This document shows, one piece after another, positions 1-64,000 of a DNA stretch of 64,000 nt. The translations under genes and the position numbers were made by a program. The stretch is taken from sequence record OU509535.1; one strand, written 5' to 3'. Positions within the stretch are counted from its first letter, which is position 1; each line of letters starts with the position of its first letter. Below the pieces are notes generated by a model that did not search any database, was not told the DNA's origin, and saw only the letters and a program-made list of their open reading frames with translations.

Positions 1-43
1 AGAAATCGAAAAGGAAATCTTTGATAAGAGATATAACCCAGAC

Positions 44-370
44 GTGGAAGTAAAAACTTCAGATATTATCGAATATGTAAAAAACACCGATGAACAAAAT
101 GAAGTCCTGGATAATATTAAACAAGAACAACTTGAAGAAATTCCTGATGATGTAATTGTAATTAAACATACTGCTCCTAACAAAGAAGATTTGGATATCA
201 TCAAAGATGCCCTTCAACAAAAAGAACTCCGTACAATTGCAAAATATGTTAAACACCTGAAAGACACCGTTCCTTCTGCTATTATGTCTGCTGTTGATAG
301 TGTGACTATTAATGACCTAATTAATGCACGAATTGCAGAAGTAAAATCAGCAGAAGAAAAAACTAAATAA
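44..370 (+). CDS. hypothetical protein
   Basis: GTG-start ORF co-directional with the downstream genes; no recognisable motif. Confidence 0.6.
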   Translation: MEVKTSDIIEYVKNTDEQNEVLDNIKQEQLEEIPDDVIVIKHTAPNKEDLDIIKDALQQKELRTIAKYVKHLKDTVPSAIMSAVDSVTINDLINARIAEVKSAEEKTK

Positions 371-401
371 TCCTATAACGAACTTTGATTAAGGGTTTAA
401 T

Positions 402-977
402 ATGGCTCAACAACAAATCGCTTTACAACAAATCAGAACAGGTAAACAGCGTGATTTACCGGATGCGTTGGAAAAAGGACAACTAGGATTCAGTACTGAC
501 GTAGGTCGTATGTTCGTTGGTTTACCATCCTCATCTGATCCTGCAAGTTTAGTAGCAGGTCGTAATTGGGACAATGCACCAAATAGTGGGAAAGAAAATG
601 TAGAAATTATTACGGAGTTTACACCATGGCAGGTTGTTTCTAATATTGTAAACCGACCGTATGTATTCTCTGTACCGAAGGGTGGCAGTACGCAAATTTC
701 AATTCAAAGTGATAATAGAGTGTTTCTTGATTATATGGCATATAACGATACTTCCAGTATTCTGGAAAGTGGTAATGTACAAATGTTGTGTAATGATTCA
801 AAAACACTACTGGCACAATTTAATAATACAACTCAAGAAGAGGGTATCATTTCATTGACTTTCTCGGATGCAACATTCGATGAAAGTACTAAATTGATGG
901 TATTCACTATCACTAATAATGACACGGAAAGTGATTATAGTATAGAATTCGTATATAGAGGCTGGGATAAACCGTAA
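402..977 (+). CDS. putative virion structural protein
   Basis: N-terminal IRTGKQRDLP..LEKGQLGFSTDVGRMFVG resembles the 'IxxGxxxxLPxxLxxGELGxxxDxxxxxIG' motif of phage tail/fibre proteins; TAAATA at 365-370 upstream. Confidence 0.55.
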   Translation: MAQQQIALQQIRTGKQRDLPDALEKGQLGFSTDVGRMFVGLPSSSDPASLVAGRNWDNAPNSGKENVEIITEFTPWQVVSNIVNRPYVFSVPKGGSTQISIQSDNRVFLDYMAYNDTSSILESGNVQMLCNDSKTLLAQFNNTTQEEGIISLTFSDATFDESTKLMVFTITNNDTESDYSIEFVYRGWDKP

Positions 978-996
978 AAGGCTCCCAGCCTTTTTA
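977..996 (+). terminator. intrinsic terminator
   Basis: aaaggct-ccc-agccttt hairpin with T tract. Confidence 0.6.
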
Positions 997-1044
997 TCCC
1001 CTAAAATAATTAAAAACAATAAAAAAAACTTAAAAGGATGTAAA

Positions 1045-3360
1045 ATGATTAACGTTATTAAACGTGATGGATCAAAAGAACCACTCGACCTTGATAAAAT
1101 TCACCAGATTTTATTTTTTGCATGTGAAGGTATTTCTGGTGTGTCTGTGTCCGAAATTGAAATTCGTGCTAAATTGCAATTTCATGAAGGAATTAAAACT
1201 TCTGTAATTCATGATATCCTAATTAAAAGTTCATCAGAGCTTATTTCTGAAGATACTCCAAATTATCAATACGTAGCTGGTCGTCTTTTGAATTATAGTA
1301 TTCGTAAAGAAGTTTATGGTCAGTATGAACCAATTCCTTACGGAGAATATGTAAATAACATGGTTCAAAAAGGTATATACGATCCTATCATTCTGGAAAA
1401 ATATAATTCAGCAGAAATCGAAGAACTCGGGAAATGCATTAAACACAAACGTGATGATAAATTTACTTTTGTTGCAATGAGTCAATGGCAAGGTAAGTAT
1501 CTGTGTAAAAACCGTGTAACTAAAGAAATTTATGAAACACCACAAATGGCTTATATGACTATCGCTGCTACGATTTTCTCTGAATACAGTACTGAAATTC
1601 GTTTGTCATATGTTAAGAAGTTCTATGATGCTATTAGTACTTTTGATATTAGTTTACCAACTCCGATTATGTCCGGTCTTCGCACTAATACACGTCAGTT
1701 CTCAAGTTGTGTAGTACTGAATGTTGGCGATAGTCTTGATAGTATTGGTTCCAGTAATCATGCAATCCTGCGTTATATTTCACGTAAAGCAGGGCTTGGT
1801 GTTAATATGGGACGTATTCGTGCAATTGATTCTGCAATTCGTGATGGCGATGCAGTACATACTGGTGTAGTACCATTCTTATCTGCATTAGCAAAAACTG
1901 TCAAAAGCTGTTCCCAGGGAGGTGTAAGAGGCGGGGCAGCAACCGTACATTTTCCAATGTGGCATTTGGAATTTGAAAATATTGTAGTACTGAAAAATAA
2001 TAAAGGAACTGAATTTAACCGAGTAAGACAACTGGACTATTGCTTCCAAATCAATAAGACATTATATCAACGATTGATTGATGGAAAAGACATTACATTC
2101 TTTAGCCCACATGATGTTCCTGATCTATATGATGCATTTTGTGCTGATCAAGAAGAATTTGAACGTCTGTATATTAAGTATGAACTTGATGAAACTATTC
2201 GTAGGAAAACTATGCCAGCGATTGAAGCATTTAGTCATCTAATACAAGAGCGTGCAGAAACTGGCCGCGTTTATATTCAGAATATTGATAATGCCAATGA
2301 GCATGGTTCATTTATTCCAGAAATTGCACCAATTGAGCAAAGTAATTTGTGTCAGGAAATTGATTTACCATCTGTTCCATTTGAAGATATTAATAATGGT
2401 GAAGGTCTTATTAGCCTATGTACTTTGAGTGCTATTAACTGGGGTAATTTTGACAAACCCGAAGATATGGAAGAAGCGTGTGATTTGGCTGTCCGTGCCC
2501 TGGATGCTATTCTTGATTATCAGGATTATCCAGTACTACATGCTGAACGAGCTACAAAGCTCTACAGACCACTTGGTGTTGGTATTATGAGCCTAGCCTA
2601 TTTCCTGGCTAAACGTGGCTTAAAATACGATACAAACGCATTGAACACTATTAACGAATGGTCAGAAGCGTGGTCTTATTATTTGATTAAAGCATCCGTA
2701 AACCTTGCAAAAGAAAAAGGGCATTGTGATGGATTTAAGAATACTAAGTACTCACTGGGTTTATTCCCACATGACACTTATAAATCAGATTCATATATCA
2801 ATGAAATTGCACCATATGAATTAAAACAAGATTGGGATTCCCTACGTGAAGAAATGATGGTGTATGGTATTCGTAATGCTACATTACATGCAAATATGCC
2901 AGGAGAAACATCATCACAAATCAGTAATAGTACTGCTGGTATTGAAAAGATTCGTTCTCTTGTAACAGTAAAAACTTCTAAAGATGGTGTTCTTAAACAA
3001 GTTGTACCTGAAATTTCAAAATTAAAGAACAAATATGACCTACTATGGGAACAATCTGATAATATTGGTTATCTTCAGGTGTGCGGCGTTATGCAGAAAT
3101 ACATGGATCAAGGTATAAGTACTAATACGAGTTATAATCCTGAAAAGTTCCAAGATGGAAAAGTGCCAATGTCAGTACTGTTAACAGAACTTCTAATGGC
3201 TTATAAACTTAACACAAAACAACTATACTATCATAACGTGTTGGACAATGCTTCTGAAGTTGATATTGACAAATATATGGAAGAAAAAAATAAATTAACA
3301 AAAAATGATATTGTTTTGCCTGAGCTACCAGAAGATGATTGTGAGAGTTGTAAATTGTAA
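1045..3360 (+). CDS. nrdA: ribonucleotide reductase class Ia alpha subunit
   Basis: ATP-cone (VIKRDG), QFSSC, SNLCQEI, RNATLHANMPGETSSQI, LYY and C-terminal CxxC (CESCKL); uninterrupted. Confidence 0.98.
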   Translation: MINVIKRDGSKEPLDLDKIHQILFFACEGISGVSVSEIEIRAKLQFHEGIKTSVIHDILIKSSSELISEDTPNYQYVAGRLLNYSIRKEVYGQYEPIPYGEYVNNMVQKGIYDPIILEKYNSAEIEELGKCIKHKRDDKFTFVAMSQWQGKYLCKNRVTKEIYETPQMAYMTIAATIFSEYSTEIRLSYVKKFYDAISTFDISLPTPIMSGLRTNTRQFSSCVVLNVGDSLDSIGSSNHAILRYISRKAGLGVNMGRIRAIDSAIRDGDAVHTGVVPFLSALAKTVKSCSQGGVRGGAATVHFPMWHLEFENIVVLKNNKGTEFNRVRQLDYCFQINKTLYQRLIDGKDITFFSPHDVPDLYDAFCADQEEFERLYIKYELDETIRRKTMPAIEAFSHLIQERAETGRVYIQNIDNANEHGSFIPEIAPIEQSNLCQEIDLPSVPFEDINNGEGLISLCTLSAINWGNFDKPEDMEEACDLAVRALDAILDYQDYPVLHAERATKLYRPLGVGIMSLAYFLAKRGLKYDTNALNTINEWSEAWSYYLIKASVNLAKEKGHCDGFKNTKYSLGLFPHDTYKSDSYINEIAPYELKQDWDSLREEMMVYGIRNATLHANMPGETSSQISNSTAGIEKIRSLVTVKTSKDGVLKQVVPEISKLKNKYDLLWEQSDNIGYLQVCGVMQKYMDQGISTNTSYNPEKFQDGKVPMSVLLTELLMAYKLNTKQLYYHNVLDNASEVDIDKYMEEKNKLTKNDIVLPELPEDDCESCKL

Positions 3361-3510
3361 TATATTAATTACTAAAAACATCACAAATTAATATCAATAG
3401 TAAAAAGCTAAACACCATATAACGGTTTTTACTTTCGAATACAAATAATAATATAATAAATCCCACAATTAAGTGGGATTTTTATTCTATAAAACAAAGG
3501 AATGTAACAA

Positions 3511-4635
3511 ATGTCAGTGTTTCAAAAAAATACAAAATCACATTTAGAAAAGAATATGTTTTTTGATGAAGCGGTAGATATCCAACGCTTTGAAACTAAC
3601 AAGTATTCTACCATTGAGAAATTAACCGAACAACAAAAAGGATTTTTCTGGAGTCCCGGTGAAGTTGACGTAAATAAAGACAAAATTGATTTTACTAAAT
3701 TATCTGAAGCGGAAAAGCATATTTTCACTTCCAACCTCAAACGTCAGATACTACTTGATTCAGTACAGGGTCGTGGTCCAAACACGGTACTTCTACCACT
3801 GGCTTCGTTGCCGGAAGTAGAAAATTTTATTGAAACTTGGGCGTTCTTTGAAGGTGCAATTCATAGTAAATCATATACTCATATTATTCGTAACATCTAC
3901 ACCAATCCATCTGAAGTATTTGATACTATGCTTGATATTCCTGAAATTCTGGATTGTGCCGTTGACGTATCTAAGTACTATGATGATTTAGAAGAATACG
4001 GTACTTGGTATCGTATGCTTGGTGTTGGCACACATACTATCAATGGTAAAGAACTTGTTATTGACATGTATGAACTGAAAAAGAAACTGTGGTTGTGCTT
4101 AAATTCCATTAACGTATTGGAGGGTATACGATTTTATGTCTCATTCGCTGCATCCTTTGCATTTGGTGAAAATAAAATCATGGAAGGTAATGCCAAGATC
4201 ATTAGACTAATTGCGAGGGATGAGTCTCTCCATTTAGCAGCAACTCAAATGATTCTTCGTTTGTTGAAAAAAGAAGATCCAGACTTTGTTAAAATTTCTG
4301 AAGAATGCTATGATGAAGTCCAGAGTATGTTCCTGGATGCTATTAAGCAAGAAGAAGACTGGGCTGATTATCTATTTAAAGATGGTTCTATTATCGGTCT
4401 TAATGCTGAAATACTAAAACAGTATGTTCGCTGGATTGGATCTAAACGTATGGCAGCAGTTGGAATTAAGTGTCCATATGCTGTAACGAAAAATAGCCCA
4501 CTCCCATGGATGGAACATTGGATTAGTAGTGCGGGTGTGCAGGTTGCACCACAAGAAACTGAAATTAGTTCCTATGTAATTGGTGGTATCAAAGCCGATA
4601 TTACAGAAAACACGTTCAGTACATTTAAACTATAA
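3511..4635 (+). CDS. nrdB: ribonucleotide reductase class Ia beta subunit
   Basis: FFWSPGEVD, QILLDSVQGRGP, HSKSY, LEGIRFYVSFA, IARDESLH, VQVAPQETEISSY. Confidence 0.98.
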   Translation: MSVFQKNTKSHLEKNMFFDEAVDIQRFETNKYSTIEKLTEQQKGFFWSPGEVDVNKDKIDFTKLSEAEKHIFTSNLKRQILLDSVQGRGPNTVLLPLASLPEVENFIETWAFFEGAIHSKSYTHIIRNIYTNPSEVFDTMLDIPEILDCAVDVSKYYDDLEEYGTWYRMLGVGTHTINGKELVIDMYELKKKLWLCLNSINVLEGIRFYVSFAASFAFGENKIMEGNAKIIRLIARDESLHLAATQMILRLLKKEDPDFVKISEECYDEVQSMFLDAIKQEEDWADYLFKDGSIIGLNAEILKQYVRWIGSKRMAAVGIKCPYAVTKNSPLPWMEHWISSAGVQVAPQETEISSYVIGGIKADITENTFSTFKL

Positions 4636-4640
4636 AATAC

Positions 4641-4674
4641 AAAATTCAGTACTTAATCAGTACTGAATTTTTTT
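4641..4674 (+). terminator. intrinsic terminator after nrdB
   Basis: 13-bp hairpin aaaattcagtact/agtactgaatttt with T tract; both arms contain AGTACT. Confidence 0.75.
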
Positions 4675-4688
4675 ATAAGGTATAAATT

Positions 4689-4880
4689 ATGGATGAAATA
4701 AATCATATTACAAAAGATGTTTTTACTATTGATTACGGGGTTGAATACAAATTCGTAATGCAAGGTGGGTTTGAAATTTTAGGCACCGTTGTTGATGTGT
4801 TTGATAACGGGATTGAGCTATCAGATGGCACTCGACTGGTGCAGGAGCATATTCTTTTATTCAAAGCGATGAAACGATAA
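4689..4880 (+). CDS. hypothetical protein
   Basis: short ORF with upstream AAGG; no motif. Confidence 0.6.
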   Translation: MDEINHITKDVFTIDYGVEYKFVMQGGFEILGTVVDVFDNGIELSDGTRLVQEHILLFKAMKR

Positions 4881-4885
4881 AATTT

Positions 4886-4915
4886 TTGAACAGACACAAA
4901 TTCATGTGATATAAT
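4886..4915 (+). promoter_or_regulatory. sigma70-type early promoter
   Basis: TTGAAC-18-TATAAT with extended TGn. Confidence 0.7.
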
Positions 4916-4952
4916 AAACTTGATAAAACACCAACACTAAGGAAACAAACAA

Positions 4953-5195
4953 ATGAACGAACTAAACAAAGAAGCTCTAAATGAAATGGTAGAAAACAAC
5001 ATCGAAGCAGCACAAGAAGAAATTGGTTATGAATTGTCAGAAGAAGATCTGGCGAAATCTCGTGATATCATTGCTCAACTGACTAAGTACTACAACATCA
5101 AAGATCAGAAACAAGAACATAACAAAAAGATCAAAGCACAACGCCGAGCTAAAAATAAAGTACAACGTAATTCTCGTCGTATTAACCGAAAATAA
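4953..5195 (+). CDS. hypothetical protein, basic C-terminus
   Basis: ORF with AAGGA RBS. Confidence 0.75.
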   Translation: MNELNKEALNEMVENNIEAAQEEIGYELSEEDLAKSRDIIAQLTKYYNIKDQKQEHNKKIKAQRRAKNKVQRNSRRINRK

Positions 5196-5210
5196 AAAGA
5201 GGTACCCAAG

Positions 5211-6328
<1,118 letters not shown>

Positions 6329-7011: not shown

Positions 7012-7734
7012 TTAATATTCCAAATAATAACCAACATCATTCGCAATATTTTGTGCTATGTTGTTGAATTGCTCAACTTCAGCTTCATCTTTAGGAACTC
7101 TTTTGAAATATACAGCAATATACCCAGTTATTGTTGCAAATTTAACAGGAGCAGAAACAAGATAAACATTTCCATCATTAACTAATGCAGGATAGTTAAT
7201 CTGAGATGTATATTCGTTTCGTGTCTCGTTACTATCTTTCAAATACTCTGTGTATATTTTTTTTATTTCAACATAATATATGTGATTATTCCATAATTTA
7301 TTAGTTTCTGCAAGAAATGAACTTAGTGGCAAGTTATCTAAATGGTAGACACTAATATCGTCTTTATTTGGTGGATTAACCTTATAGGTAACTAAAATAC
7401 GTCTTTCTGAAAATTGTGTATTTTCAGGAACATACTTATAAACTAATATCATAGATATATCATTTGGATAAGCATTGATTGCTTTAGTTAGCCCTTTATC
7501 AATAGTATCTTTATTTTCTTTCTTTATAGTATACTTCGTAGAATTTCCTAGTTCTTCATGTTTATTGGGATTGTTTAATGTATTATTGATATATAATGTC
7601 CAAGAATCTGCTGTACTATATATAATAAAACCAATAACCAAGCAAAAAAACACTGTAATTATTTTAGAAGTCTTCCATTTCGTGATCATATCAAGGAGTT
7701 TATTAATATTTTCACTATCAAAATTGATATTCAT
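7012..7734 (-). CDS. T4 holin T-like protein
   Basis: TM near N-terminus; MILVYKYVPEN ~ gpT FSAVYSFRPKN; YLVSAPV..ITGYIAVYF ~ YMYSCPY..YAGTITMYW (recalled alignment). Confidence 0.55.
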   Translation of the reverse strand: MNINFDSENINKLLDMITKWKTSKIITVFFCLVIGFIIYSTADSWTLYINNTLNNPNKHEELGNSTKYTIKKENKDTIDKGLTKAINAYPNDISMILVYKYVPENTQFSERRILVTYKVNPPNKDDISVYHLDNLPLSSFLAETNKLWNNHIYYVEIKKIYTEYLKDSNETRNEYTSQINYPALVNDGNVYLVSAPVKFATITGYIAVYFKRVPKDEAEVEQFNNIAQNIANDVGYYLEY

Positions 7735-7807: not shown

Positions 7808-8164
7808 ATGATAATTTTATACTTTCTATGGATTAATATATTATTAGTACTGATAACTACAGGATTTAGTACTACTGCAATTGTTGTTTATATTTTAAGT
7901 TCAGTGTTTATTATTATGAGATCATTATCTATAATTTTCAGTACTGAATTAGCAAAAAAGAATAATGATTTTTATGTCTTTTTATCGGAACTTAAAGATG
8001 ATAATCCAAAATTAACTAAAAGTAACATCGTGTGTTCCAATTTAATACATTTGATACTAATATTTGTATTTTTGCATAGTTATATTGCATTGGGCTTTGT
8101 ATTATTTAATGTTATTATTAGACTTATCGAATCATATAAAATGGAGAAATTATTTAATGGCTAA
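7808..8164 (+). CDS. membrane protein
   Basis: several hydrophobic helices. Confidence 0.65.
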   Translation: MIILYFLWINILLVLITTGFSTTAIVVYILSSVFIIMRSLSIIFSTELAKKNNDFYVFLSELKDDNPKLTKSNIVCSNLIHLILIFVFLHSYIALGFVLFNVIIRLIESYKMEKLFNG

Positions 8165-15750: not shown

Positions 15751-17461
15751 ATGAAACATGATGAAGTAGTTAGTATAATTAAAAAATTTGCCAATGAAGT
15801 CAAGTCCAATGGGGAATCAGTACTAAAGCAAATTAAAAAGATGGATAGATATGAAGAAGTTATTTCATATCTAAAAAGCTATTATGGTGACTATGATATT
15901 AAAGTTCTAATTGGTTCAGTACTAAATGATTTAGATACCATTCCCATTGCTGCTTGTGGGAATGTATGTAGATTTGATGGATTAAAATTGAGGTACGTAT
16001 GTACCTCATATAAAATGAACAAAGAAGAAACATGTCCTGAGTGTCATATTAAATTAAAAGAAATAATGAACAACAACAGAATGCAATCTGTGGAAATGAA
16101 GTACGGTACTCCATATATATCTAAAGTTCCAGAATTTAGAGAGAAAGCAAAAAATACAATGTTTAATGAGTATGGTGTATATAATATTTCTAATTTGGAT
16201 TCTGTGAAAAAGAAAAAAAGTGATAATTATCACAATAAAAGTTTAGAAGAAAAAGAACGTATTAAAGAAAAAAATAAGAAAAAAGTAATACAGACATATG
16301 GTGTTGATAACGTATCTAAATCTGAAATTGTAAAACAAAAGAAACTTGGTAATAAAAATCCATTCAATAATAGTACTTTTAAAATTAAAAATATCATTAA
16401 TACAACCAAACGAAGATATAATAGCATAACAGACTATTTAAAAACCAATGATAAACCATATACACTAACTTACATGCCATTTGCATATAAAGATGACCAT
16501 GTATTTCAATGTAAGTGTGGTGAAATTATAAGTTGTAAAATACAATCGTTTGATACAATACGTTGTTATAAATGTTTCCCATTGGAAGTAAGTTCTGGTG
16601 AACTTTGGTTGAGACAAGAAATTGAAAATATTATAAGTAATACATCAACAAGTACTGAAATGTTATTAAATCAAAGGTATGATTTTATTGATAACATAGA
16701 AATTGATATATACTTACCTGAATTGAAAATAGGTTTTGAATTCAATGGTTCGTACTGGCATAATGATGAACACAAAGATAAGTACTATCATCAGAAGAAA
16801 TCGATTTCTGCAAAAAACAATGGTATCAATTTAATACATATCCATGAATCTGATTATAATAAAATAAAAGATAAAATTGTAATGAGATTAAAACATGTAT
16901 TAAACAAAAATGATAAAACAATTTATGCAAGAAAATGTATTGTAAAAGAAGTATCATTTAAAGAAAGTGAAGTATTTTTGGATGAATATCATTTTCAACA
17001 ATCACGTGTATCAGGTATAAGAATTGGATTATATTATGATAATGAATTAGTAGCATTGGCTACGTATGGAAAATCCAGATATGACAAAAAATATGAATAT
17101 GAATTATTGAGATTCTGTACCAAGTATTCGGTACCGGGTGGATTTAGTAAAATAATGAAATACTTTGAGCAAACATACAACCCTAAATCATTGATGACAT
17201 ATGCCGATCTGGACTGGAGTAATGGTAATGTTTATGAAAAAAAATGGGTTTGAGTTTGTGAAATACACCGAACCAAGTTACTTTTACGTGGATAAATATC
17301 AAAATAAAATTTCAAGATATGATTGTCGTAAAACTGAATTATTAAAACTATATGATTGGGCTACCAATGATATGACGGAAACTGAAATCTGTAAAAAATT
17401 AAATTACAATAAAATATATTCATCTGGAAATATAGTTTATCGTAAAATATATAACAAATAA
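15751..17461 (+). pseudogene. freestanding homing-endonuclease-like gene (PD-(D/E)xK nuclease plus GNAT-like domain), split by a 1-nt frameshift
   Basis: repeated KYGxxxxS-type units, EIDIYLPELKIGFEFNGSYWH, ELLRFC..PGGFSK..TYADLDWS; A8 run at 17237-17244; A7 would join the frames as YEKNGFEF. Confidence 0.7.
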
Positions 17462-30070: not shown

Positions 30071-31168
30071 ATGTTAAGTTATGTCATTTTGTTACTACCT
30101 GCACTTATTGTTATGTTTGTGATGAAATACATTTATAACAAAGAAATTAGTACTAAAGAATTTTTGATTCATGGGGCTATTTGTATTATTAGTGCAACTG
30201 TTGTATTGGCACTTTCTTATGCAATAAATTACGCTTCATTGACTGATACCCAGATTTTAAATGGTAAAGTACTAAGTAAGAACAAACACGTTGAGACTTG
30301 TACTCAATATAGCTCGTGTGAGCATTATTATGTAAAAGAAAAATGTCATTATTACACAGATAGTAAAGGAAAACGTCACAAAAGTTGTGAAACATATAAA
30401 GTGTTTGATTATCCGTATGAAGTTGACTGGTATGTCAATACCAGTGTGGGTGACTTCAAAATTAAACGAGTCAACCGACAAGGTACTACAACACCAAATA
30501 GATGGTCGGTTGTTAAAATAAATGATTATGCAAGTAATACTTCATATTATATAAATTATCTTCTTTCTGATAAAAATTCATTATTCAGTACTGAAAATGA
30601 TATCAAAAATTACAGCGAAAAATATTTGAATTCTCTACCAGAATATCCTGAAATTTTTGATTATTATCATACTGAACATGTAATCAATACAACAAAAGCA
30701 GATGTTTCTGGTTTTGATGAATACATTAAAGATGAACTGAAAGATTTGGGATCATCTAAACAAGTAAACATTGAAATATTAATTTATGATTACAAAGATG
30801 TTGACTTTGTTGATGCAGTATTGTTAAAATGGAAGGGTGGTAAGAAAAATGATGTTATCATGTTCTTTGGTATTGATGAAAATTCAATTGTAAAATCTTT
30901 CGTAAGTACATCTTTCGCCAAAGGAGTTGGTAATGAAGAATTACATTCCAAAATGAGAATTGATGCATTACAAGAGAAATTAAATCTTGACTTAATCAAA
31001 AAGGAAGTACATAATATCAGTACAAAGTTCGTAAGACAACCAAATGAAAACTTTTCTTATCTAGCAACAAAACTGGAACCAAGAAAAGATGTGATGATTT
31101 TGGTGTCTATTCTACTGTTAATTCTGTCCTATTTCGTTGGACTATATATGAGAGATAATGAAGTATGA
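30071..31168 (+). CDS. membrane protein with large extracytoplasmic domain
   Basis: N- and C-terminal TMs; WKGGKKNDVIMFFG. Confidence 0.7.
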   Translation: MLSYVILLLPALIVMFVMKYIYNKEISTKEFLIHGAICIISATVVLALSYAINYASLTDTQILNGKVLSKNKHVETCTQYSSCEHYYVKEKCHYYTDSKGKRHKSCETYKVFDYPYEVDWYVNTSVGDFKIKRVNRQGTTTPNRWSVVKINDYASNTSYYINYLLSDKNSLFSTENDIKNYSEKYLNSLPEYPEIFDYYHTEHVINTTKADVSGFDEYIKDELKDLGSSKQVNIEILIYDYKDVDFVDAVLLKWKGGKKNDVIMFFGIDENSIVKSFVSTSFAKGVGNEELHSKMRIDALQEKLNLDLIKKEVHNISTKFVRQPNENFSYLATKLEPRKDVMILVSILLLILSYFVGLYMRDNEV

Positions 31169-39406: not shown

Positions 39407-40300
39407 ATGTTTATGAAACCTATTACAGTACTGTCATTATTCAATGGGATGAGTGTTGGGTATATGGCACTAAAGAATGCTGGAATTCCAGTACAGAAAT
39501 ATTACTCATCAGAAATTGATAAATTTGCTATTGCTGAATCACAAGCCAACTACCCTGATATTATTCAGTTAGGTGATATAACTAAATGGGAAGATTGGGA
39601 TATCGACTGGGGTAGTATTGACCTACTTATTGGTGGAAGTCCTTGTACTGATGTAAGTTTTGCGGGAAAACAAGAGGGGTTAGTGAAACCAGATGAAAAC
39701 GGTGATGGTGGAACACGAAGTGGTTTATTTTATATAATGATTGACATATTCAATCATATTAAATCGATAAATCCAGATTTAAATTTTTTATTTGAAAATG
39801 TCAAGATGAAAAAAGAACATCTTGAAGAATTTAATAATAATATAGGGGTTGATCCTGTTCTAATCAATTCTGAATTATATACTGCTCATTACAGACAGAG
39901 ATATTACTGGATTAGCTCAAATAAGCTAATTCTCAATCCCACCTACAAAGCCCCCGTACTTCAAGATATTATTGTTAATGCATATACTGACAGGAATAAA
40001 TCATATTGCATTGATGCCAATTACTGGAAAAAGGGGAACATTAAACAGTACTTACACAAATCAAGAAGACAGATTGTTTATCTAAGAGACGATCATGATT
40101 TATTCAGTACTGAAGAAAAAATTAACACATTTAAACTTAATGTTGATTATCGACATTTAACAGTAGATGAAGTATGTTTATTACAGGGTGTACCTGTTGG
40201 ATTTTTTAAAGTAAGTAGTACAACACAAGCATACAAAATGCTAGGTAATGGATGGACATGTCCAGTTATTGAACATCTATTAAAGGAAATTTTCTTTTAA
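39407..40300 (+). CDS. DNA (cytosine-5) methyltransferase, orphan
   Basis: motif I LFNG, IV GGSPC, VI FENV, VIII RQRYYW, X LGNGW. Confidence 0.92.
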   Translation: MFMKPITVLSLFNGMSVGYMALKNAGIPVQKYYSSEIDKFAIAESQANYPDIIQLGDITKWEDWDIDWGSIDLLIGGSPCTDVSFAGKQEGLVKPDENGDGGTRSGLFYIMIDIFNHIKSINPDLNFLFENVKMKKEHLEEFNNNIGVDPVLINSELYTAHYRQRYYWISSNKLILNPTYKAPVLQDIIVNAYTDRNKSYCIDANYWKKGNIKQYLHKSRRQIVYLRDDHDLFSTEEKINTFKLNVDYRHLTVDEVCLLQGVPVGFFKVSSTTQAYKMLGNGWTCPVIEHLLKEIFF

Positions 40301-40558: not shown

Positions 40559-41029
40559 GTGGATTTTTTTCTATTTGAGATTAAATTAAACATGCATAAT
40601 GAAGAAATAATTCATTTTCTTAAATTTTATTTAAAATGTATGAATGCTGTTCAAAAATTAATGGAATGTGAAATGATTAATGATTTCAATGATCATTTTG
40701 GATATATAAGTACAGATTTATATCCCGTCCCTGTTCGTGCAAAATGGAATTATGATCAAGATGCATATGCAATGCAACTGGATTTTGATTTATTCGGACT
40801 TCCATCTAAATTTAATATAGGAACTATTTGTTTTGATAAAAATGATGGTTTGATTTTAATTTGTTATAACAATAAAACAGAAGTTGATTTAAAATACAGA
40901 GAATGGTTAACCGAAGAATCGTTTTTTCAGTCCTCGTTAATATATGATTTTGGTAGTACTGATTTACAGTACTGGAAAAAATGCATTGATTTATTTGAAA
41001 AGATTGAAGGAGTAATGACAGGTGTTTAA
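40559..41029 (+). CDS. FQxS-motif paralog family protein
   Basis: WLTEESFFQSSLIYDF; true start uncertain. Confidence 0.8.
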   Translation: MDFFLFEIKLNMHNEEIIHFLKFYLKCMNAVQKLMECEMINDFNDHFGYISTDLYPVPVRAKWNYDQDAYAMQLDFDLFGLPSKFNIGTICFDKNDGLILICYNNKTEVDLKYREWLTEESFFQSSLIYDFGSTDLQYWKKCIDLFEKIEGVMTGV

Positions 41030-51465: not shown

Positions 51466-51557
<92 letters not shown>

Positions 51558-51578
51558 TAAAATTCAATTAAAAAAGTG

Positions 51579-51764: not shown

Positions 51765-51785
51765 AAATTTTAATTTAAATAGTAC

Positions 51786-51814
51786 TTGACAAAAATGTTC
51801 AGTACTTATATAAT
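51786..51814 (+). promoter_or_regulatory. sigma70 promoter for the intron-containing tRNA
   Basis: TTGACA-17-TATAAT with AGTACT at 51781 and 51801. Confidence 0.8.
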
Positions 51815-51829
51815 GTAGAAAAGAACATC

Positions 51830-52130
51830 GGGACTGTAGCTCAGGGGTGAGAGCAACCGACTCATGGTTATCGTGACTTTCACAAGCAATTGTGATTGAA
51901 AAACTGGATGAATTCAGGGAAACCTTAACACGTAATGGTGATGGCAATCCTGAGCCAAGCCCAATAAGCGTATTGGGAAGGTGCAGAGACTAGGTGGTTC
52001 AGCACGATCTTGCTGTGTAATACACCAATAGCGTCCGGCATCCTTATGGGATGATGATATAGTCCGTGCCTTTACGAAAGTATTGGATAAACGAATCGGC
52101 AGGTCGTTGGTTCAAAACCAACCAGTCCCA
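51830..52130 (+). tRNA. tRNA-CAU (probably Ile2, possibly elongator Met) split by a group I intron; exons 51830-51865 and 52094-52130
   Basis: joined exons give a cloverleaf with loop CT-CAT-AA; lacks initiator features. Confidence 0.88.
51866..52093 (+). mobile_element. group I intron (IC3, tRNA-intron type), 228 nt, no internal ORF
   Basis: P AATTCAGGGAAAC, Q AATCCTGAGCC, R GGTGCAGAGACT, S GATATAGTCC; U-G at the 5' splice site (tcat/gtga), P10 ggtt/aatc, terminal G. Confidence 0.92.
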
Positions 52131-52148
52131 CTTATTAAAGAAAATACA

Positions 52149-52574
52149 ATGGAATGGCGTAAATTATATCTAAAGGAATTAGATATCTATATAAATGTAT
52201 CAGATGAAGGTAATCTTCAAACATTCGATAGATATGTAACACAAACATCAATAAAAGGCAATGAATATACTAGACTAGTTGAAGGAAAAGAACTTTGTCC
52301 ATACATTAATGGTAAAGCTGGATATAGTCAAATTGGTATTCATTCTGGTGGTATACAGAAAAAATACTATGTTCATCGTCTTGTGTGGATAGCTTTCAAT
52401 GGTGAAATACCAGAAGGTTATGAAATTGATCATGATGATAATGATAAAAGTAATAATGCATTGAGCAATTTAAATCTTAAAACAAGAAAAGAAAATATGG
52501 ATAAAATGCTCATACATAGACCGTATATAAAAGAAAATTTCATTAAGAACTTTGCTCAAAAGAAAAACAAATAA
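52149..52574 (+). CDS. freestanding HNH homing endonuclease (NUMOD4-like + HNH)
   Basis: VSDEGN, VHRLVWIAFNGEIPEGYEIDHDDNDKSNNALSNL. Confidence 0.92.
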   Translation: MEWRKLYLKELDIYINVSDEGNLQTFDRYVTQTSIKGNEYTRLVEGKELCPYINGKAGYSQIGIHSGGIQKKYYVHRLVWIAFNGEIPEGYEIDHDDNDKSNNALSNLNLKTRKENMDKMLIHRPYIKENFIKNFAQKKNK

Positions 52575-57186: not shown

Positions 57187-57195
57187 GGAAGTACA

Positions 57196-59000: not shown

Positions 59001-59242
59001 TGAACCAACAATACATGATTAAAGTGGTTTTGTACAAAAATGATAGTCAGAGAACTAAAATCTGTTCTTCTTATGTTCAGTCATTACCAAGAACCGGAGA
59101 ACTTATTACAGTACTTAATGATAAATTCATTGTTGAACAGATTGAACACACACTGTATCCAATTAGTACAACCGATACTGTTTCGTGGAATATGAATCAA
59201 CATTCTGAATCTGGTATTGCTATTATTTGTACAAAAACATAA
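59000..59242 (+). CDS. hypothetical protein (paralog of previous gene)
   Basis: LPRTGELI..FIVEQIEH. Confidence 0.7.
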   Translation: MNQQYMIKVVLYKNDSQRTKICSSYVQSLPRTGELITVLNDKFIVEQIEHTLYPISTTDTVSWNMNQHSESGIAIICTKT

Positions 59243-59702
59243 GGTACCACAATATATGATGTATTTTATATTTCTGTACTTAATATGTCACCTTGTTATT
59301 GTTACTATTATGGACAGACATTCACACTTTGGATATAGTTATAAAGTTGCTAAGATTTATGGTTTTAAATCTTATTTTGTTGCACTATTTTATAGTTATA
59401 TACTCGATCCAAAGTATATGATATTGTCTCTTATACTACAAAAAGAAGCAAACATTGATACTATTTCTAAAATAGAATTCGTATGTAGGCGATTTCTTAA
59501 TTCGGATGATAAATGTTCAGTTGAATTTCATTCGGATAAAGTTATTTTTGTATATAACAACGTATTCACTTGTGGTATTGAATTAAATCAGGTATTAGGC
59601 ATAGTTGATATTTCATGGAATCATAACGTCATTATGCATCCAAGAACTATCAAGCTAATAGAAGCATGTAAAATAAAAGTTGACAGCGACACAAAGAGAT
59701 GA
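59217..59702 (+). CDS. membrane protein
   Basis: hydrophobic N-terminal half; start uncertain. Confidence 0.6.
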   Translation: MLLFVQKHKVPQYMMYFIFLYLICHLVIVTIMDRHSHFGYSYKVAKIYGFKSYFVALFYSYILDPKYMILSLILQKEANIDTISKIEFVCRRFLNSDDKCSVEFHSDKVIFVYNNVFTCGIELNQVLGIVDISWNHNVIMHPRTIKLIEACKIKVDSDTKR

Positions 59703-59730
59703 TATTATATAGAATAAACATATTAAAGAG

Positions 59731-60204
59731 GTGTATATGGATGCTTTAGCTACTCTATTCAAACTGAATACTTCAGAAAAAGAAGGTTATTTGAGTATCA
59801 GTGATCTTGAAAATACAAGTGAATATATTTTCAAAAATACAATCAAAATTAAAGCGAATAAGGATAAAAGCAATACACATTTCACAAAATGGATTGCTTA
59901 TTGGGAGGGTGTTAATTTCGCAGTTGAAATGACAGTTCTACCAAAAGTATTAAGTACCGGATTTGTTAAAGTTGTTATTATTGATAAAAATCTTCGACCA
60001 ATTTCAGAAATTGGTGAATACCCGGTTAAGGGTACTAAAGTTTTTGGTACCATGATCAATAATAAGTTCATGATCGAAAAAACAAAAACTCAATACATCA
60101 ATCAGGTTATTTCTGAATTCGAGAACAAACCTAAACCAAAAACTAAAACTGAAACCAATGAAGAATATGTTAATAAAATTAAAGAAGCATGGGGATTGAA
60201 ATAA
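59731..60204 (+). CDS. hypothetical protein
   Basis: GAGG RBS, promoter upstream. Confidence 0.75.
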   Translation: MYMDALATLFKLNTSEKEGYLSISDLENTSEYIFKNTIKIKANKDKSNTHFTKWIAYWEGVNFAVEMTVLPKVLSTGFVKVVIIDKNLRPISEIGEYPVKGTKVFGTMINNKFMIEKTKTQYINQVISEFENKPKPKTKTETNEEYVNKIKEAWGLK

Positions 60205-60653
60205 TGTTAACTTTAAAAAATCTAAAGCACTTAATTATGATTAGTATTATCCTATTCATCTCCAATGTACCTATGGATATTTTTAAATTTGGTGACACAC
60301 GATTGGGTGCATTCATTGGTGTATATAGTTTAATATTCTGCATCATAACATTTGTGGTTGCGTTTGTTATGTTCATTGAAGATATGTATGATGATAAAGA
60401 CTTTTATTTCGAATTTCTCGGAAAAGATAGTTATTCATTTATCTGGACATTCTCTATTTTACCAGCATTAATTTATGCATTCTTTATCGCAGAGGGTGGT
60501 ATCGCCTATGGAGTTATGGGTATCTTCTTATTTCTTTTCTGGGAAAGAATCAGAACTATTCAAAACCGATATGCTCAAGAATATCGTGATGAAGAACTAA
60601 AAAATGAAGCAATGCGTAAGAATTATCCACCAGAAGAGGTAGAAATTAAATGA
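60189..60653 (+). CDS. multi-TM membrane protein
   Basis: about 4 hydrophobic helices. Confidence 0.75.
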   Translation: MGIEIMLTLKNLKHLIMISIILFISNVPMDIFKFGDTRLGAFIGVYSLIFCIITFVVAFVMFIEDMYDDKDFYFEFLGKDSYSFIWTFSILPALIYAFFIAEGGIAYGVMGIFLFLFWERIRTIQNRYAQEYRDEELKNEAMRKNYPPEEVEIK

Positions 60654-61078
60654 GTACTTATTTGAAAATAACACTATTTGCTTTTATTGTATTTCTTATT
60701 CAGTTATATGGTATTCTTGTACATAACTACAATTTACCTTCATTTCTGAATGAATCTTGGTATATTGGTTCTTTTTGGGTTACTGGAGCATTGGGTGTAC
60801 TTGGGGTAATTCTGTCAATTGCAATAATCATTATTACAGCCGACGATGCAGACAAAGAAACTACTATTAAAATGTTTGGATTTGATGAACTTAGTCCGTG
60901 GATTTATAGTAGACCATTCCTTTTATTGGCTATTGTATTTGTACAACTAGGTTCTCTATGGGTTGCTGCTTTCTGTTTTAGTGTGTGGTCTTACCAAACT
61001 CTTCAGATTAGTGAACACCGTGACTATTTGATTGAAAAGCTAACAAAAGAGGCAGAAAAAGGCACCAAAAATCATTAA
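60650..61078 (+). CDS. multi-TM membrane protein (probable paralog of previous)
   Basis: same TM layout, FLGKDSYSFIW ~ MFGFDELSPWIY. Confidence 0.75.
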   Translation: MSTYLKITLFAFIVFLIQLYGILVHNYNLPSFLNESWYIGSFWVTGALGVLGVILSIAIIIITADDADKETTIKMFGFDELSPWIYSRPFLLLAIVFVQLGSLWVAAFCFSVWSYQTLQISEHRDYLIEKLTKEAEKGTKNH

Positions 61079-61148
61079 TCATTGACAAATGTTCTTCACA
61101 TGAGGTAATATCATTACCTCATTTTAATTCAAAAGAAGGAATGCAACC

Positions 61149-61451
61149 ATGAAAGATATTCTCATTGCAGTTGATGGTAGTGCTAAAACAATATCAAAAG
61201 GTATGCGTCTCTCCGTAGCCAAAACCCTTAGTAATGTATGCCCTGATTCTAAAATTTTATTTTGTCAAATTACAGACAAAAATATTATAGAATTAGATAT
61301 TGATTTATTCTTTAAGTATGATCATCTTTTGTGTGGCACAAAAGCAAATATTGATCTGATATATTTAATTGATGATTTTGATCATAAATTCCTTATCACA
61401 GATAACAGTAATATTGAAAGTTCTGAAAACTTCAATGTAGTACTTTACTAA
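61149..61451 (+). CDS. hypothetical protein
   Basis: AAGGA RBS. Confidence 0.7.
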   Translation: MKDILIAVDGSAKTISKGMRLSVAKTLSNVCPDSKILFCQITDKNIIELDIDLFFKYDHLLCGTKANIDLIYLIDDFDHKFLITDNSNIESSENFNVVLY

Positions 61452-61471
61452 CCAACTGGAGATGTATTATA

Positions 61472-61927
61472 ATGCAAAAACTCAATGCATGGGTAGAGAA
61501 TACCAGAATTTATCCACCTTCTGAAATGTTTTATCAGGCTGACTCAAAACAAGCAAAGGCCGAGAAACGCATTGTAAGCATCTGTGAAGAGCTTTATGTT
61601 TTTACCTGTACTACCCTAAGCGATATGAGAGCGGCCTACACAGAGCTTTCTATGGCGGTTAGAATGGGTATTTCGGATATGCGTCAGGTTTATGTAGAAG
61701 AAATTTGTGGAAAGACTGCATTTCATATTGATAATGCAGTAAAAGCATTAGACACTATGCATAAGCGAGATCCACTTCTACAGGCTTATTATAAAGAATG
61801 GTCATGTAAATCAAAGGATTTAAAAGATGAAATTAAATCTACACTGATCAATGCTTTTCCGGGTGTTGATAAATCCGTACTTTTATCAAACCTACAGTAC
61901 TGGTACGATAAAGAGAGTGAAAAATGA
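61472..61927 (+). CDS. hypothetical protein
   Basis: GGAG RBS. Confidence 0.75.
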   Translation: MQKLNAWVENTRIYPPSEMFYQADSKQAKAEKRIVSICEELYVFTCTTLSDMRAAYTELSMAVRMGISDMRQVYVEEICGKTAFHIDNAVKALDTMHKRDPLLQAYYKEWSCKSKDLKDEIKSTLINAFPGVDKSVLLSNLQYWYDKESEK

Positions 61928-62436
61928 CAACTGTTTACATCGATAAACGTTGTGGATTGGCAATGACTGATTCGAGAGTTACATCTACAATAGAACGTGC
62001 TTTTCTTGGTATCTTTCCATTGCAATCAAAAAATCAATACAGTAAAGTACTACAAAAATCAATGTACATCCACGACCGATTATTTCTAAGTTGTGGTACT
62101 GTATCTGAGATTAACAAGGTACTAAGGTATTTGGTTGAACAAAAACCAATAGTACCAAGTAGAAAAGATGGATGCCACTGTCTTTTACTTGATAAAGAGT
62201 ATTGTATTAATTTTGTAATTCACAATGGTGTACTGAAAAAGTTTGTGCAATTCATTGATAAAAATTATGTATTCAGTATGGGTAGTGGTTCTTCTCATAT
62301 GAAAAATGCTTTTCATGGCGTTGGTTCATTGATATTAGATAATACGTCATTATCAGAATACGTTATTTCTGAATTCAGTAAAGTATCAGAAAAAGATATA
62401 TATACTGATAATAATATTAATTTATACAAAATTTGA
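61924..62436 (+). CDS. HslV/proteasome-beta-like Ntn peptidase
   Basis: M-T-T start, AMTDSRVT, SMGSGS. Confidence 0.7.
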   Translation: MTTVYIDKRCGLAMTDSRVTSTIERAFLGIFPLQSKNQYSKVLQKSMYIHDRLFLSCGTVSEINKVLRYLVEQKPIVPSRKDGCHCLLLDKEYCINFVIHNGVLKKFVQFIDKNYVFSMGSGSSHMKNAFHGVGSLILDNTSLSEYVISEFSKVSEKDIYTDNNINLYKI

Positions 62437-62499
62437 TTAATTTAAAGACCAAATTGAATTTGGTCTTTTTTGTTTTATTACATATAAAAAGGATGAATA

Positions 62500-63396
62500 A
62501 TGAAAGAAGTTGATCTAAATGAACTAAGTACTGAAATCATGGAAACATTATTTGATGAATCTGATGTTGAGCAATCAAAAAATATTAAGAGTATAAAAGA
62601 TAATATTAGTCTCAAACATCCAACTGGTGTTACAAATGAAATGCTGTTAAATGAAATACATAATGGTATTAATGTAAAACAAAATCGTGAATTACTTATC
62701 CGTTATAATTATCCACTAGCAGTCAGTATTGCTAAACGTTGTAAATGTTATATTCCAGAAGAAGATAAAATTTCTTATGCAGTAGAGGGTCTTTTGAATT
62801 CAATTCATAATTTTGATGTTACAAAAGGTGTATTATTCAGTACTTATGCCAGTGCTTCCATTTACATGACAGTGATGAACATGAGTAATGAACATAATAA
62901 TTTAGTTTATATCCCCCGCCATGTAAGTGTACATAATGTTAATATTCGTAAATTTGCAAATGACTACGAAAAGAAACACGGCAAAAAATGCAAACCTGAA
63001 CTTATTTCAAAAGAACTCGGAATTAATGTTGATACTGTTGAGTTGTGTTTGTCTTTCCAGGAAACCACATCTCTTGATACTCCAACTTCTGATGATAGTA
63101 CTGCATTAATTGATACCATTGCCAGTGATTGTAATGTAGAACAAAATGACGTTGATAGTATTGTTCTGGAATTGATGAATGAACTAGAACCAAAAGAAAA
63201 GGAAATCCTTTCCAGAATTTATGGTTTAAATGGATATGCACCTGAAACCTATGATAGCTTGATCAGTACTGGATTTTATGATAAAAAGGGTAAACGTATT
63301 ACTGTTCGCGGAACTTTACACTACAAATTTAGTACTGCACTTGAGAAACTAAAGCGTTTGGTTCGTCTAAAAGGATTAACTGCCAAAGATGTTTAA
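62500..63396 (+). CDS. sigma70-family RNA polymerase sigma factor
   Basis: region 2 (NYPLAVSIAK, EGLL..FDVTKG.LFSTYA, VYIP), region 3 (SLDTP), region 4 (LEPKEKEIL..YGL). Confidence 0.9.
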   Translation: MKEVDLNELSTEIMETLFDESDVEQSKNIKSIKDNISLKHPTGVTNEMLLNEIHNGINVKQNRELLIRYNYPLAVSIAKRCKCYIPEEDKISYAVEGLLNSIHNFDVTKGVLFSTYASASIYMTVMNMSNEHNNLVYIPRHVSVHNVNIRKFANDYEKKHGKKCKPELISKELGINVDTVELCLSFQETTSLDTPTSDDSTALIDTIASDCNVEQNDVDSIVLELMNELEPKEKEILSRIYGLNGYAPETYDSLISTGFYDKKGKRITVRGTLHYKFSTALEKLKRLVRLKGLTAKDV

Positions 63397-63422
63397 ATTG
63401 ATATTTTTTCTTTATTAAATAC

Positions 63423-63451
63423 TTGAACAAAATTTTTTACAGTGATATAAT
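63423..63451 (+). promoter_or_regulatory. sigma70-type promoter
   Basis: TTGAAC-17-TATAAT, TGn. Confidence 0.8.
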
Positions 63452-63456
63452 GTTTG

Positions 63457-64000
63457 TAATACATGGATGTTGGACATTCTTTTTGAAAAGAACGTATGGA
63501 TAAAAACCCGATTAGCCGAAAATGTAACGCTACGGATGAGTATAACCAACATATACGAGATGCAGAGGATACCCGAAAGGCGAGACGGCATCTAAAAGGA
63601 TAGGAAATAGCACTGCCTATCCCAAGCTTACATTAGGCTTGATAGATCGCAAATCTGGTTGAGTCCAGACAAATAAAGAGTGTAAGGGAGATTATTTTCT
63701 TTTAGATATTTTGGAAATAATCACGGTACTGAATTGCTTGAATAGTTCGGTACTGAAGTGCAAGTATGTTTAAACTTGTGACCGTTGCATGTGACTGCGA
63801 TAGGACGAAACAGGGCAACCCGCGTTCGTGTACCGAAAGGTATAATTCGCAATTCAAGGAATTTCGACAGCTACGAGCTTCAAGGCTTAGCTTTTTATTT
63901 CTCTTCCCCTCCCTGTGGGGGGATGAAAATATCTCGTGCAAACGCCTTCAAGTATTGAAATTCACGAAGTGAATTGAAATTACTTGTTCTGTAGTCGAAC
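63457..64000 (+). ncRNA. candidate large structured ncRNA (runs off window)
   Basis: no credible CDS; GC-richer than flanks; many helices (agatgc/gcatct, ggatagg/cctatcc, gaattgc/gcaattc, aattcac/gtgaatt). Confidence 0.6.

Follow-up and report, generated by a model that had tools for sequence, protein, structure and literature searches.

The palindrome AGTACT is strongly over-represented in Rak2-like jumbo phages and in an unrelated family of temperate enterobacterial phages

Introduction

The palindrome AGTACT recurs throughout the last 64 kb of sequence record OU509535.1, the genome of a Klebsiella jumbo phage of the RaK2/K64-1 group (Alcyoneusvirus), in a pattern that recalls highly iterated palindrome 1 (HIP1, GCGATCGC) of cyanobacteria. 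HIP1 too is a short palindrome that, as an 8-mer, exceeds expectation tens- to hundreds-fold, that is found in all reading frames as well as between genes, and that spreads by point substitution rather than by transposition. HIP1, however, is a word of cellular chromosomes and embeds methyltransferase targets, whereas AGTACT is phage-specific, is depleted in the hosts and is tracked by no methyltransferase. In cyanobacteria, HIP1 co-occurs with methyltransferases.

Several other systems share part of this pattern. Chi (GCTGGTGG), the DNA uptake sequences and uptake signal sequences (DUS/USS) and the FtsK-orienting polar sequences (KOPS) resemble AGTACT in exerting a weak force per site, in being individually dispensable and taxon-specific, and in acting through their density, but they are asymmetric and orientation-biased words of host genomes with known readers, while AGTACT is symmetric and rare in the host. 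Among phages, the stoperators of mycobacteriophage L5 are asymmetric, transcription-oriented sites present in tens of copies and read by an immunity-group-specific phage repressor, and the operators of P1 C1 and SPO1 TF1 are likewise spread over phage genomes. These have in common with AGTACT that many copies of one word occur across a phage genome, early promoters included. AGTACT differs from the L5 stoperators in comprising about 900 symmetric sites, in extending across genera and 2 phage families, and in having no repressor that we could find. The binding site of the nucleoid-occlusion factor SlmA, GTGAGTACTCAC, is an enterobacterial 12-bp palindrome with the same AGTACT core, differing at flank positions 1 and 3.

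AGTACT is also the recognition sequence of ScaI and Eco255I, and phages are expected to lose palindromes. The genomes described here do so to an extreme degree and yet keep AGTACT at about 900 copies per genome; other palindromes are avoided in them and AGTACT is the opposite, 7–14× enriched, whereas it is depleted in the Pseudomonas phage PA5oct and in Escherichia phage DCP80. We found no earlier report of the enrichment in the searchable literature. The reading that we prefer, and hold tentatively as a possible one, is that AGTACT is a positively maintained signature word, a binding site for a dimeric and possibly host-encoded protein that would act through site density.

Results and discussion

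Enrichment in the window and across Rak2-like genera

The whole 64,000-nucleotide stretch is referred to here as the window. Over an 8-kb query stretch its identity to RaK2, K64-1, Muenster and others is 99.1–99.6%, and the RaK2 record (345,809 bp) served as its whole-genome proxy. Its genes include those for topoisomerase II subunits, between which a homing endonuclease is inserted, together with a tRNA cluster and a gene for a C5 DNA methyltransferase. The 5 enterobacterial Rak2-like genera were represented by RaK2, 121Q, SE_PL, GAP32 and CBB, and PA5oct was included as a related Pseudomonas phage.

A reading of the window from its letters alone, referred to below as the sequence-only reading, had tallied some 140 copies of AGTACT against roughly 20 expected. 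There are 146 exact copies (2.3/kb), and base composition predicts 21. Dinucleotide-preserving shuffles of the window (n = 100) gave 13.7 ± 3.9 copies with a maximum of 27, and Markov models built on 3-mers and 4-mers predict 29 and 62, so that a bias in 4-mers falls short of the observed count. A further comparison is a synonymous-codon shuffle carried out inside each gene, which keeps both the protein sequence and the codon usage. It yielded 53.7 ± 5.3 copies and never more than 65 (observed z = 17.5), and the same shuffle gave 396 ± 14 copies for RaK2, where 937 are found. The enrichment is real and lies beyond every null that we tried. Since the codon-shuffle null is itself 2.5–4× the composition null, codon usage and protein sequence must already be tilted toward AGTACT. 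In the window, AGTACT and its sub-words GTACTG and CAGTAC are the 3 most over-represented hexamers, and AGTACT is the only strongly enriched palindrome.

The comparison with related phages shows 7- to 10-fold enrichment in all 5 Rak2-like genera and none in PA5oct:

RaK2: 937 AGTACT, 8.0× composition
121Q: 903 AGTACT, 7.6× composition
SE_PL: 853 AGTACT, 7.3× composition
GAP32: 1011 AGTACT, 8.4× composition
CBB: 1235 AGTACT, 9.7× composition
PA5oct (related Pseudomonas phage): 15 AGTACT, 0.2× composition, depleted

The more distant, topoisomerase II-bearing phages RL2RES, CM1 and SCTP-2 showed no enrichment of AGTACT.

The sites use all 3 reading frames, as had been noted from the letters, with 67 read as AGT-ACT, 53 as xxA-GTA-CTx and 12 as xAG-TAC-Txx, and a further 14 are not entirely within open reading frames (ORFs). 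The accompanying claim that protein sequence does not drive the enrichment is upheld on 3 counts set out below: the intergenic density is equal or higher, the flanking preferences are the same in all frames and between genes, and the proteins are bent toward the motif.

A symmetric 12-mer

The full word is a symmetric 12-mer of about TTCAGTACTGAA, or roughly TTC-AGTACT-GAA. C at −1 and G at +1 are found in 46–56% of sites, T is preferred at −2 and −3 and A at +2 and +3, and the rarest base at −1 is G (2–14% of sites). No conserved sequence is seen past about 12 bp around the sites. The window has 35 copies of CAGTACTG (0.5 expected), 12 of TCAGTACTGA (0.06 expected) and 5 of TTCAGTACTGAA; in RaK2 the corresponding counts are 247 against 2.9 (85×), 73 against 0.34, and 34 against 0.04. 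The exact matches to the full word in the window are:

7937..7948, no strand: full 12-mer TTCAGTACTGAA, with other copies starting at 30584, 40103, 48332 and 57444

The flank preferences are mirror-symmetric and are seen between genes as well as in every frame, which makes them a property of duplex DNA rather than of codons; an origin of the C/G flanks in codon usage was rejected on the same grounds. The 2 half-sites are positively coupled, with an odds ratio (OR) of 1.8–3.1 for A...T around GTAC (p < 1e-13). Judged from these patterns, symmetric flanks with coupled halves are what recognition of duplex DNA by a dimer would predict.

Imprint on proteins

In the motif-rich genomes, each dipeptide that AGTACT can encode is over-represented relative to its mirror: Ser-Thr has an observed/expected ratio of 1.37–1.72 (Thr-Ser, 0.83–1.02), Val-Leu 1.31–1.56 (Leu-Val, 0.93–0.98) and Gln-Tyr 1.26–1.65 (Tyr-Gln, 0.92–1.32). 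The ratio for Ser-Thr in PA5oct is 0.99. AGT-ACT encodes 49–62% of the Ser-Thr pairs in the motif-rich genomes, against 12–16% expected from codon usage and 2% in PA5oct. Where a frame-0 site of RaK2 is absent at the orthologous position of 121Q, the amino acids differ in 93 cases and are the same in 10. The force behind AGTACT is thus strong enough to alter which codons are chosen and which amino acids are encoded. Reading of the motif in frame 0 also causes over-use of the codon AGT in the phage, for which a tRNA gene in the window may compensate:

51470..51558, + strand: tRNA-Ser(GCU), reading AGU/AGC; AGU is the first codon of frame-0 AGT-ACT

The same word in an unrelated temperate family

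A scan of a viral collection with a 14-mer and paired 8-mers, followed by a site-density screen of loci, recovered a second family, temperate phages of about 33 kb that infect Leclercia, Enterobacter and Phytobacter and are unrelated to the Rak2-like jumbo phages. One complete genome, here called G003 (33,770 bp, GC content 41.5%), carries 147 copies of AGTACT against 10.4 expected (14×) and 61 ± 5 in the codon shuffle, and 62 copies of CAGTACTG against 0.4 expected (about 155×). Its density is 9.1/kb between genes and 3.8/kb in coding sequence, and its frame usage and flanks match those of the jumbo phages. The terminase and portal of G003 are of lambda type, its capsid-protease is of HK97 type, and it encodes a large serine recombinase; by tblastn and 242 family hidden Markov models (HMMs), its overlap with RaK2-type phages is confined to an endolysin, an HNH module and a tail-fibre fragment. 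Relatives of G003 at 26–48% protein identity, with GC contents of 36–45%, display the same syndrome, and the chromosomes of Leclercia, Phytobacter and Enterobacter harbour prophages near-identical to G003 (terminase 79–95% identical). By terminase, the closest isolate is Escherichia phage DCP80, in which AGTACT is depleted (10 copies, against 50 of the mirror word). Finding the same word and flanks in an unrelated temperate family weakens the case for the phage factor of the sequence-only reading, if such a factor is taken to be inherited within the clade.

The chromosomes that receive these prophages do not share the word. At the border of the Enterobacter prophage, AGTACT drops to 0 while GCGC climbs from 0 to 7–37 per 2 kb, and the host flank has no AGTACT in 6 kb. 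So sharp a border implies that no host-wide bias in mutation accounts for the enrichment. E. coli K-12 has 400 copies of AGTACT in 4.64 Mb, against 1147 of the mirror word and 0.35× the uniform expectation, a density about 30-fold lower than in the phages; CAGTACTG itself is not avoided there (78 copies). With host chromosomes about 30-fold poorer in it, AGTACT would mark phage DNA against host DNA.

A further viral contig, IMGVR_UViG_3300027749_002876 (G005, 524,565 bp), has 173 AGTACT against 26 of the mirror word. Its first 200 kb have 62 copies against 67 expected by composition, which is no enrichment, and its sites may be concentrated beyond that point.

Loss of other palindromes, extra Chi, and what they could explain

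Three further anomalies co-occur with AGTACT enrichment in the same genomes: loss of GCGC, a purge of GC-rich palindromes, and extra Chi. GCGC is at 0 in the window, in the whole genomes of RaK2, 121Q, SE_PL, GAP32 and CBB, where 215–390 copies are expected per genome, and in G003, where 62 are. Between 16 and 28 six-mer palindromes are at zero in the 5 jumbo phages and G003 (26 in the latter), and none in PA5oct, a purge of restriction sites that is the most extreme we have met. E. coli Chi is about 15–20× enriched in RaK2, 121Q, SE_PL, GAP32, CBB and G003 and absent from PA5oct, and it is orientation-biased, with 15 forward and 3 reverse copies in RaK2 (0.8 and 0.5 expected) and 3:0 in G003. 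GCGC avoidance as complete as this, in genera that infect different hosts, suggests that some GCGC-specific agent, encoded by host or phage, is constantly present.

If GCGC decayed by transitions it would yield GTAC, its double-transition product, and AGTACT could then be a by-product of restriction avoidance, of composition or of codon usage. The absence of GCGC fits this, as does a codon-shuffle null (54) that already stands above the composition null (14–21). We give the idea scarcely any credence, and to the extent that sequence statistics can decide, the nulls refute it. A large excess remains after the codon shuffle, after Markov models of orders 0–3 and in the intergenic sites; the expected GCGC (215–390 per genome) is several-fold too small to account for a GTAC excess of about 1300–2000 and an AGTACT excess of about 740–1100, so the AGTACT excess does not come from GCGC decay; and neither the flanks nor the fixed promoter positions described below would be explained.

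A second idea that these anomalies bring to mind is that AGTACT works as a Chi-like attenuator or a means of defence evasion, modulating an enterobacterial nuclease or defence system so that word-rich DNA survives, with a palindrome working both ways on a linear genome. The co-occurrence with Chi enrichment, with the complete loss of GCGC and with 16–28 missing palindromes, none of which is found in PA5oct, speaks for it, as do the restriction of the word to one host family, its density-type behaviour and the weak selection per site. On the other side, the promoter and operator-like placement of sites would go unexplained, the host chromosome, which should share a protective word, is depleted in it, and we know of no enterobacterial nuclease or defence system that reads AGTACT. 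We consider this quite unlikely; given the Chi co-enrichment and the restriction-site purge, a Chi-like role against a host nuclease is nonetheless a plausible special case.

Distribution along the genome, promoters and terminators

Outside the early region, AGTACT occurs at 2.3–2.4/kb in coding and 2.4–3.0/kb in intergenic DNA. Gaps between sites are exponential, as in a Poisson spread (coefficient of variation 1.0–1.2), so the sites are not evenly spaced and a requirement for even spacing was rejected. Superimposed on this uniform density is a field of about 25 kb with some 40 small hypothetical genes, presumed to be the early region, in which the density rises to 4.8/kb in coding and 13.8/kb in intergenic DNA. 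A dense zone of this type exists in every Rak2-like genome. The close pairs of sites in the window are given here with the 2 transcription signals discussed next:

51781..51815, + strand: sigma-70-type promoter, TTGACA-N17-TATAAT; AGTACT at 51781 abuts the −35 and at 51801 lies beside the −10, the 20-bp spacing of the early-promoter class
4641..4678, + strand: intrinsic terminator, a 13-bp stem formed from motif copies at 4648 and 4659, then a T-run
40955..40973, no strand: close intragenic AGTACT pair with 13-bp spacing
7846/7868, 9400/9427, 32027/32053 and 41798/41815, no strand: further close AGTACT pairs

Within the early zone, a 20-bp peak in the spacing between sites traces to one promoter class, AGTACTTGACA-N9-yCAGTACTG-TATAAT. 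A scan that began from sigma-70-like −35/−10 matches and was blind to AGTACT found the word at fixed offsets (starts at −7, counted from the −10 hexamer, and at −27 to −30) in 25–30% of sigma-70-like promoters of all 5 genera and in 0 of PA5oct. The promoter that had been noticed at 51781 and 51801 belongs to this class, both copies adjoining its TTGACA-N17-TATAAT. If a dimer were bound at such early promoters, it would be expected to modulate the access of RNA polymerase.

Pairs of AGTACT also double as the arms of terminator hairpins, and stems of this sort arise from pairs spaced 10–11 bp apart. The terminator whose arms had been assigned to 4641–4671 is a clear case, in that the sites at 4648 and 4659 pair in a 13-bp hairpin before a U-run. 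The hairpin at 4641..4678 has a predicted energy of −13.6 kcal/mol (z = −4.8), and 0 of 200 shuffles folded as well.

Operator-like placement is seen in G003 as well, where 2 near-identical arrays, ttcAGTACTggt-N11-accAGTACTnAGTACTacc, lie at 6200–6250 and 7040–7085, upstream of 2 leftward genes.

Gain and loss of sites

RaK2 and 121Q are about 72% identical, and 31% of RaK2 sites are kept in 121Q, against 17% for all hexamers and 15% for composition-matched ones. The remaining 70% or so have turned over while the total has stayed constant. The state of orthologous positions is bimodal, with an excess of exact matches and of positions with at least 3 mismatches and a deficit of one-mismatch states (14%, against a background of 31%).

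On a shorter time scale, changes were polarised on the terminal branches of 4 genomes that are 98–99% identical, using an empirical mutation spectrum and 179 composition-matched control hexamers. AGTACT losses numbered 90 against 129 expected (0.70; controls pooled 0.84, interquartile range 0.65–1.02), and single-step gains numbered 34 against 23.4 (1.45; control median 0.60, 97.5th percentile 1.27, maximum 1.47). Creation of AGTACT is therefore about 2.3× that of the control hexamers, with loss at roughly the control rate, and the single-step gains show that sites propagate by substitution. Between the window and RaK2, 136 sites are shared, 9 are found only in the window and 7 only in RaK2. 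Single sites are therefore nearly neutral (effective strength near S = 1), and density is kept up by a weak directional force.

These dynamics bring to mind a functionless molecular drive, in which context-biased repair or gene conversion during phage replication or recombination makes AGTACT faster than it decays, as has been proposed for HIP1 and very short patch (VSP)-type repair. This is a serious rival to a binding word. Gains at about 2.3× control with losses near the control rate, single-nucleotide polymorphisms (SNPs) that are not depleted in sites, turnover of about 70% of positions between genera at constant density, Poisson spacing, and a deficit of one-mismatch orthologous states are all what it would produce. 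We nevertheless judge it somewhat unlikely. No Vsr was found in RaK2, 121Q or SE_PL, and the trait is tracked by neither a methyltransferase nor any other gene; the near-cognate words include no single drained source, with the transition neighbours of AGTACT at 1.1–3.3× expectation; the prophage is enriched and the flanking host DNA, under the same replication and repair enzymes, is not; the fixed promoter positions and the denser early region suggest use; and the 2 unrelated families would need one bias without a common enzyme. It should be said that weak selection and biased gene conversion predict near-identical numbers and are inseparable on these data; with individual sites nearly neutral, a binding site and biased creation are not separable from sequence.

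Candidate drivers and readers

The window encodes one enzyme of obvious relevance to a HIP1-type mechanism:

39407..40300, + strand: Dnmt3-like C5 cytosine DNA methyltransferase (PF00145, E 1e-30; DNMT3B, E 2e-22)

In sequence this protein most resembles the eukaryotic DNMT3A/B catalytic domains (E 2e-22), with the bacterial enzymes M.HhaI and M.HaeIII matching at only E about 1e-6 to 1e-8. If a phage methyltransferase targeted AGTACT, methylation-dependent repair or protection might drive the enrichment, in the strict HIP1 manner, and the presence of a C5 methyltransferase within the window and the association of HIP1 with such enzymes invite that view. The C5 enzyme, however, is present in RaK2, 121Q, GAP32 and CBB and absent from SE_PL, G003 and PA5oct, so that 2 of the enriched genomes do without it. 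It is Dnmt3-like with a target that is only presumed, Pfam scans of RaK2, 121Q and SE_PL found none of PF01555 (N4/N6), PF02086 (D12) or PF03852 (Vsr), and deamination of m5C would destroy sites rather than create them. With the sole enzyme found missing from enriched genomes of both families, a methyltransferase or Vsr was rejected as the driver, although an enzyme of some unrecognised methyltransferase family might be present, and we regard strict HIP1-type methylation as very improbable. The sequence-only reading had proposed a binding, methylation or recombination site or a mutational sink; the enrichment, its independence of protein coding and the likeness to HIP1 (a genome-wide palindrome, in all frames and between genes, spread by substitution) survive from it, and the link to methylation, like a clade-inherited factor, is unsupported or weakened.

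Another candidate in the window is the "Hef-like" homing endonuclease at 15751–17253 (+ strand), between the genes for the large and medium subunits of topoisomerase II, which in the Muenster annotation is matched by HHpred to the Vsr fold (1VSR). It was set aside as a driver; it is absent in 121Q, where the topoisomerase II subunit genes adjoin, and so is not a clade trait.

Among host proteins, SlmA is the obvious candidate, and AGTACT could titrate or activate it. The core is identical and the host range corresponds to SlmA-bearing bacteria. The SlmA site needs G1, T2, a purine at position 3, A4 and G5 in each half-site (PMC3020112). The phage flanks are T-T-C against the required GTR, G at −1 is disfavoured, and G occupies SlmA position 3 in 7% of sites; there are 0–1 full SlmA-type sites per genome, and 11–17 half-site fits among about 900 sites. 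No TetR-type gene was found in the phages. SlmA was accordingly rejected as the reader, and titration or activation of this factor is extremely improbable.

Other regulators fared no better. The TrpR operator has a CTAG-containing core and a GTACT-N8-AGTAC geometry. TrpR was rejected, as the CTAG core is avoided in RaK2 (CTAG at 0.29× and ACTAGT at 0.26× expectation) and there is no 14-bp spacing peak; a LexA-type geometry was rejected in the same way, with no 18-bp spacing peak between sites. The 12-mer does appear in PMC2811016, solely as a mispredicted motif.

On the phage side, phyletic profiling left 118 RaK2 ORFs that are conserved in the 5 rich genomes and absent from PA5oct, too many to resolve. 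The conserved early-zone genes, which encode proteins of 216, 89 and 73 aa, have no DNA-binding domain, and no repressor or helix-turn-helix gene was found among them or among the scanned genes of the G003 regulatory region. Comparison of the 2 families by tblastn and the 242 family HMMs gave only the lysozyme, HNH and tail-fibre matches and thus no common reader gene, and a marginal pair of small proteins considered as a shared reader failed pairwise comparison. One early-zone gene, RaK2 240708–240929, encodes a ParE-like toxin domain (E 2e-10) and is 1 of only 3 early-zone genes conserved in all 5 jumbo genera.

A possible binding word that would act through its density

Symmetry, uniform density, fixed promoter positions, protein cost, weak force and restriction to the phage DNA of one host family are together better fitted by a dimeric, bulk-acting factor than by the alternatives that we tested. 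We therefore return to the proposal of a binding word. A two-fold symmetric protein would bind approximately TTC-AGTACT-GAA on double-stranded DNA, and its effect would come from the density of sites and not from any single one, so that density would be the selected quantity. About 2.4 sites/kb could be held throughout the genome by a directional force that is weak at each site (effective strength near S = 1). The word would mark phage DNA against host DNA and would, in addition, be set at fixed spots of an early sigma-70 promoter subclass, flanking the −35 and beside the −10. As for the reader, 2 unrelated families with the same word and flanks, related hosts and no common reader gene make a host protein or process likelier than a phage-lineage protein; it might be a conserved protein of Enterobacteriaceae or a process common to the infection of these hosts.

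A number of observations weigh against this proposal. At the level of single sites there is almost no purifying selection, with a loss rate within the control range, and SNPs within sites between the window and RaK2 (18, against 11.5 expected) are not depleted; biased creation without any function would give the same site dynamics. The coupling between half-sites is modest, and the outer C...G pair is nearly independent (OR 1.0–1.5). Most of the window's sigma-70-like promoters lack AGTACT, which confines the word to a promoter subclass. Our scans found no reader protein, and the sole host protein with an AGTACT core known to us is SlmA, whose flanks do not fit. Small DNA-binding proteins can diverge beyond detection, which leaves room for a reader shared by the phages instead of one supplied by the host. 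Finally, it would be unusual for a host to supply a reader that aids 2 phage families and yet to keep its own chromosome poor in the word, and we know of no citable precedent.

A broader version of the same proposal is that AGTACT, read by a host factor or infection process and tied to the loss of GCGC and the gain of Chi, is a mark of phage DNA on which unrelated phages of Enterobacteriaceae, virulent as well as temperate, have converged. We consider this unlikely, but if it were true it would amount to discrimination of self from non-self by sequence only, together with capture of a host factor, without base modification.

In any case, AGTACT is kept at measurable protein cost in 2 families that have only a host family in common, and the pattern points to a new interaction of phage DNA with a protein or process of enteric bacteria. 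Rak2-like jumbo phages of Klebsiella and E. coli are candidates for therapy, so a reader of AGTACT may matter for how their early genes are controlled, for their host range and for efforts to engineer them, and recoding or synthesis that is blind to AGTACT could change fitness. With isolates available and many close genomes, these phages also offer a tractable case for how iterated words such as HIP1 persist.

Other features of the window and of G003

In the segment 51778–52574, Rfam identifies a group I intron (RF00028, 89.9 bits; conserved core at about 51898–52086), and an HNH endonuclease ORF (52083–52574) comes after it. The segment 51811–52569 is absent from RaK2. At about 51831–51868 there is a tRNA-like 5' half whose anticodon-like loop has CAT, and the intron may interrupt a tRNA gene. 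Rfam placed the P1 helix of the intron on a hairpin of 2 AGTACT copies.

In G003, the ORFs between about 5.2 and 9.3 kb have 0–1 AGTACT each, unlike the remaining genome, and this segment is either a regulatory/lysogeny module or recently acquired DNA.

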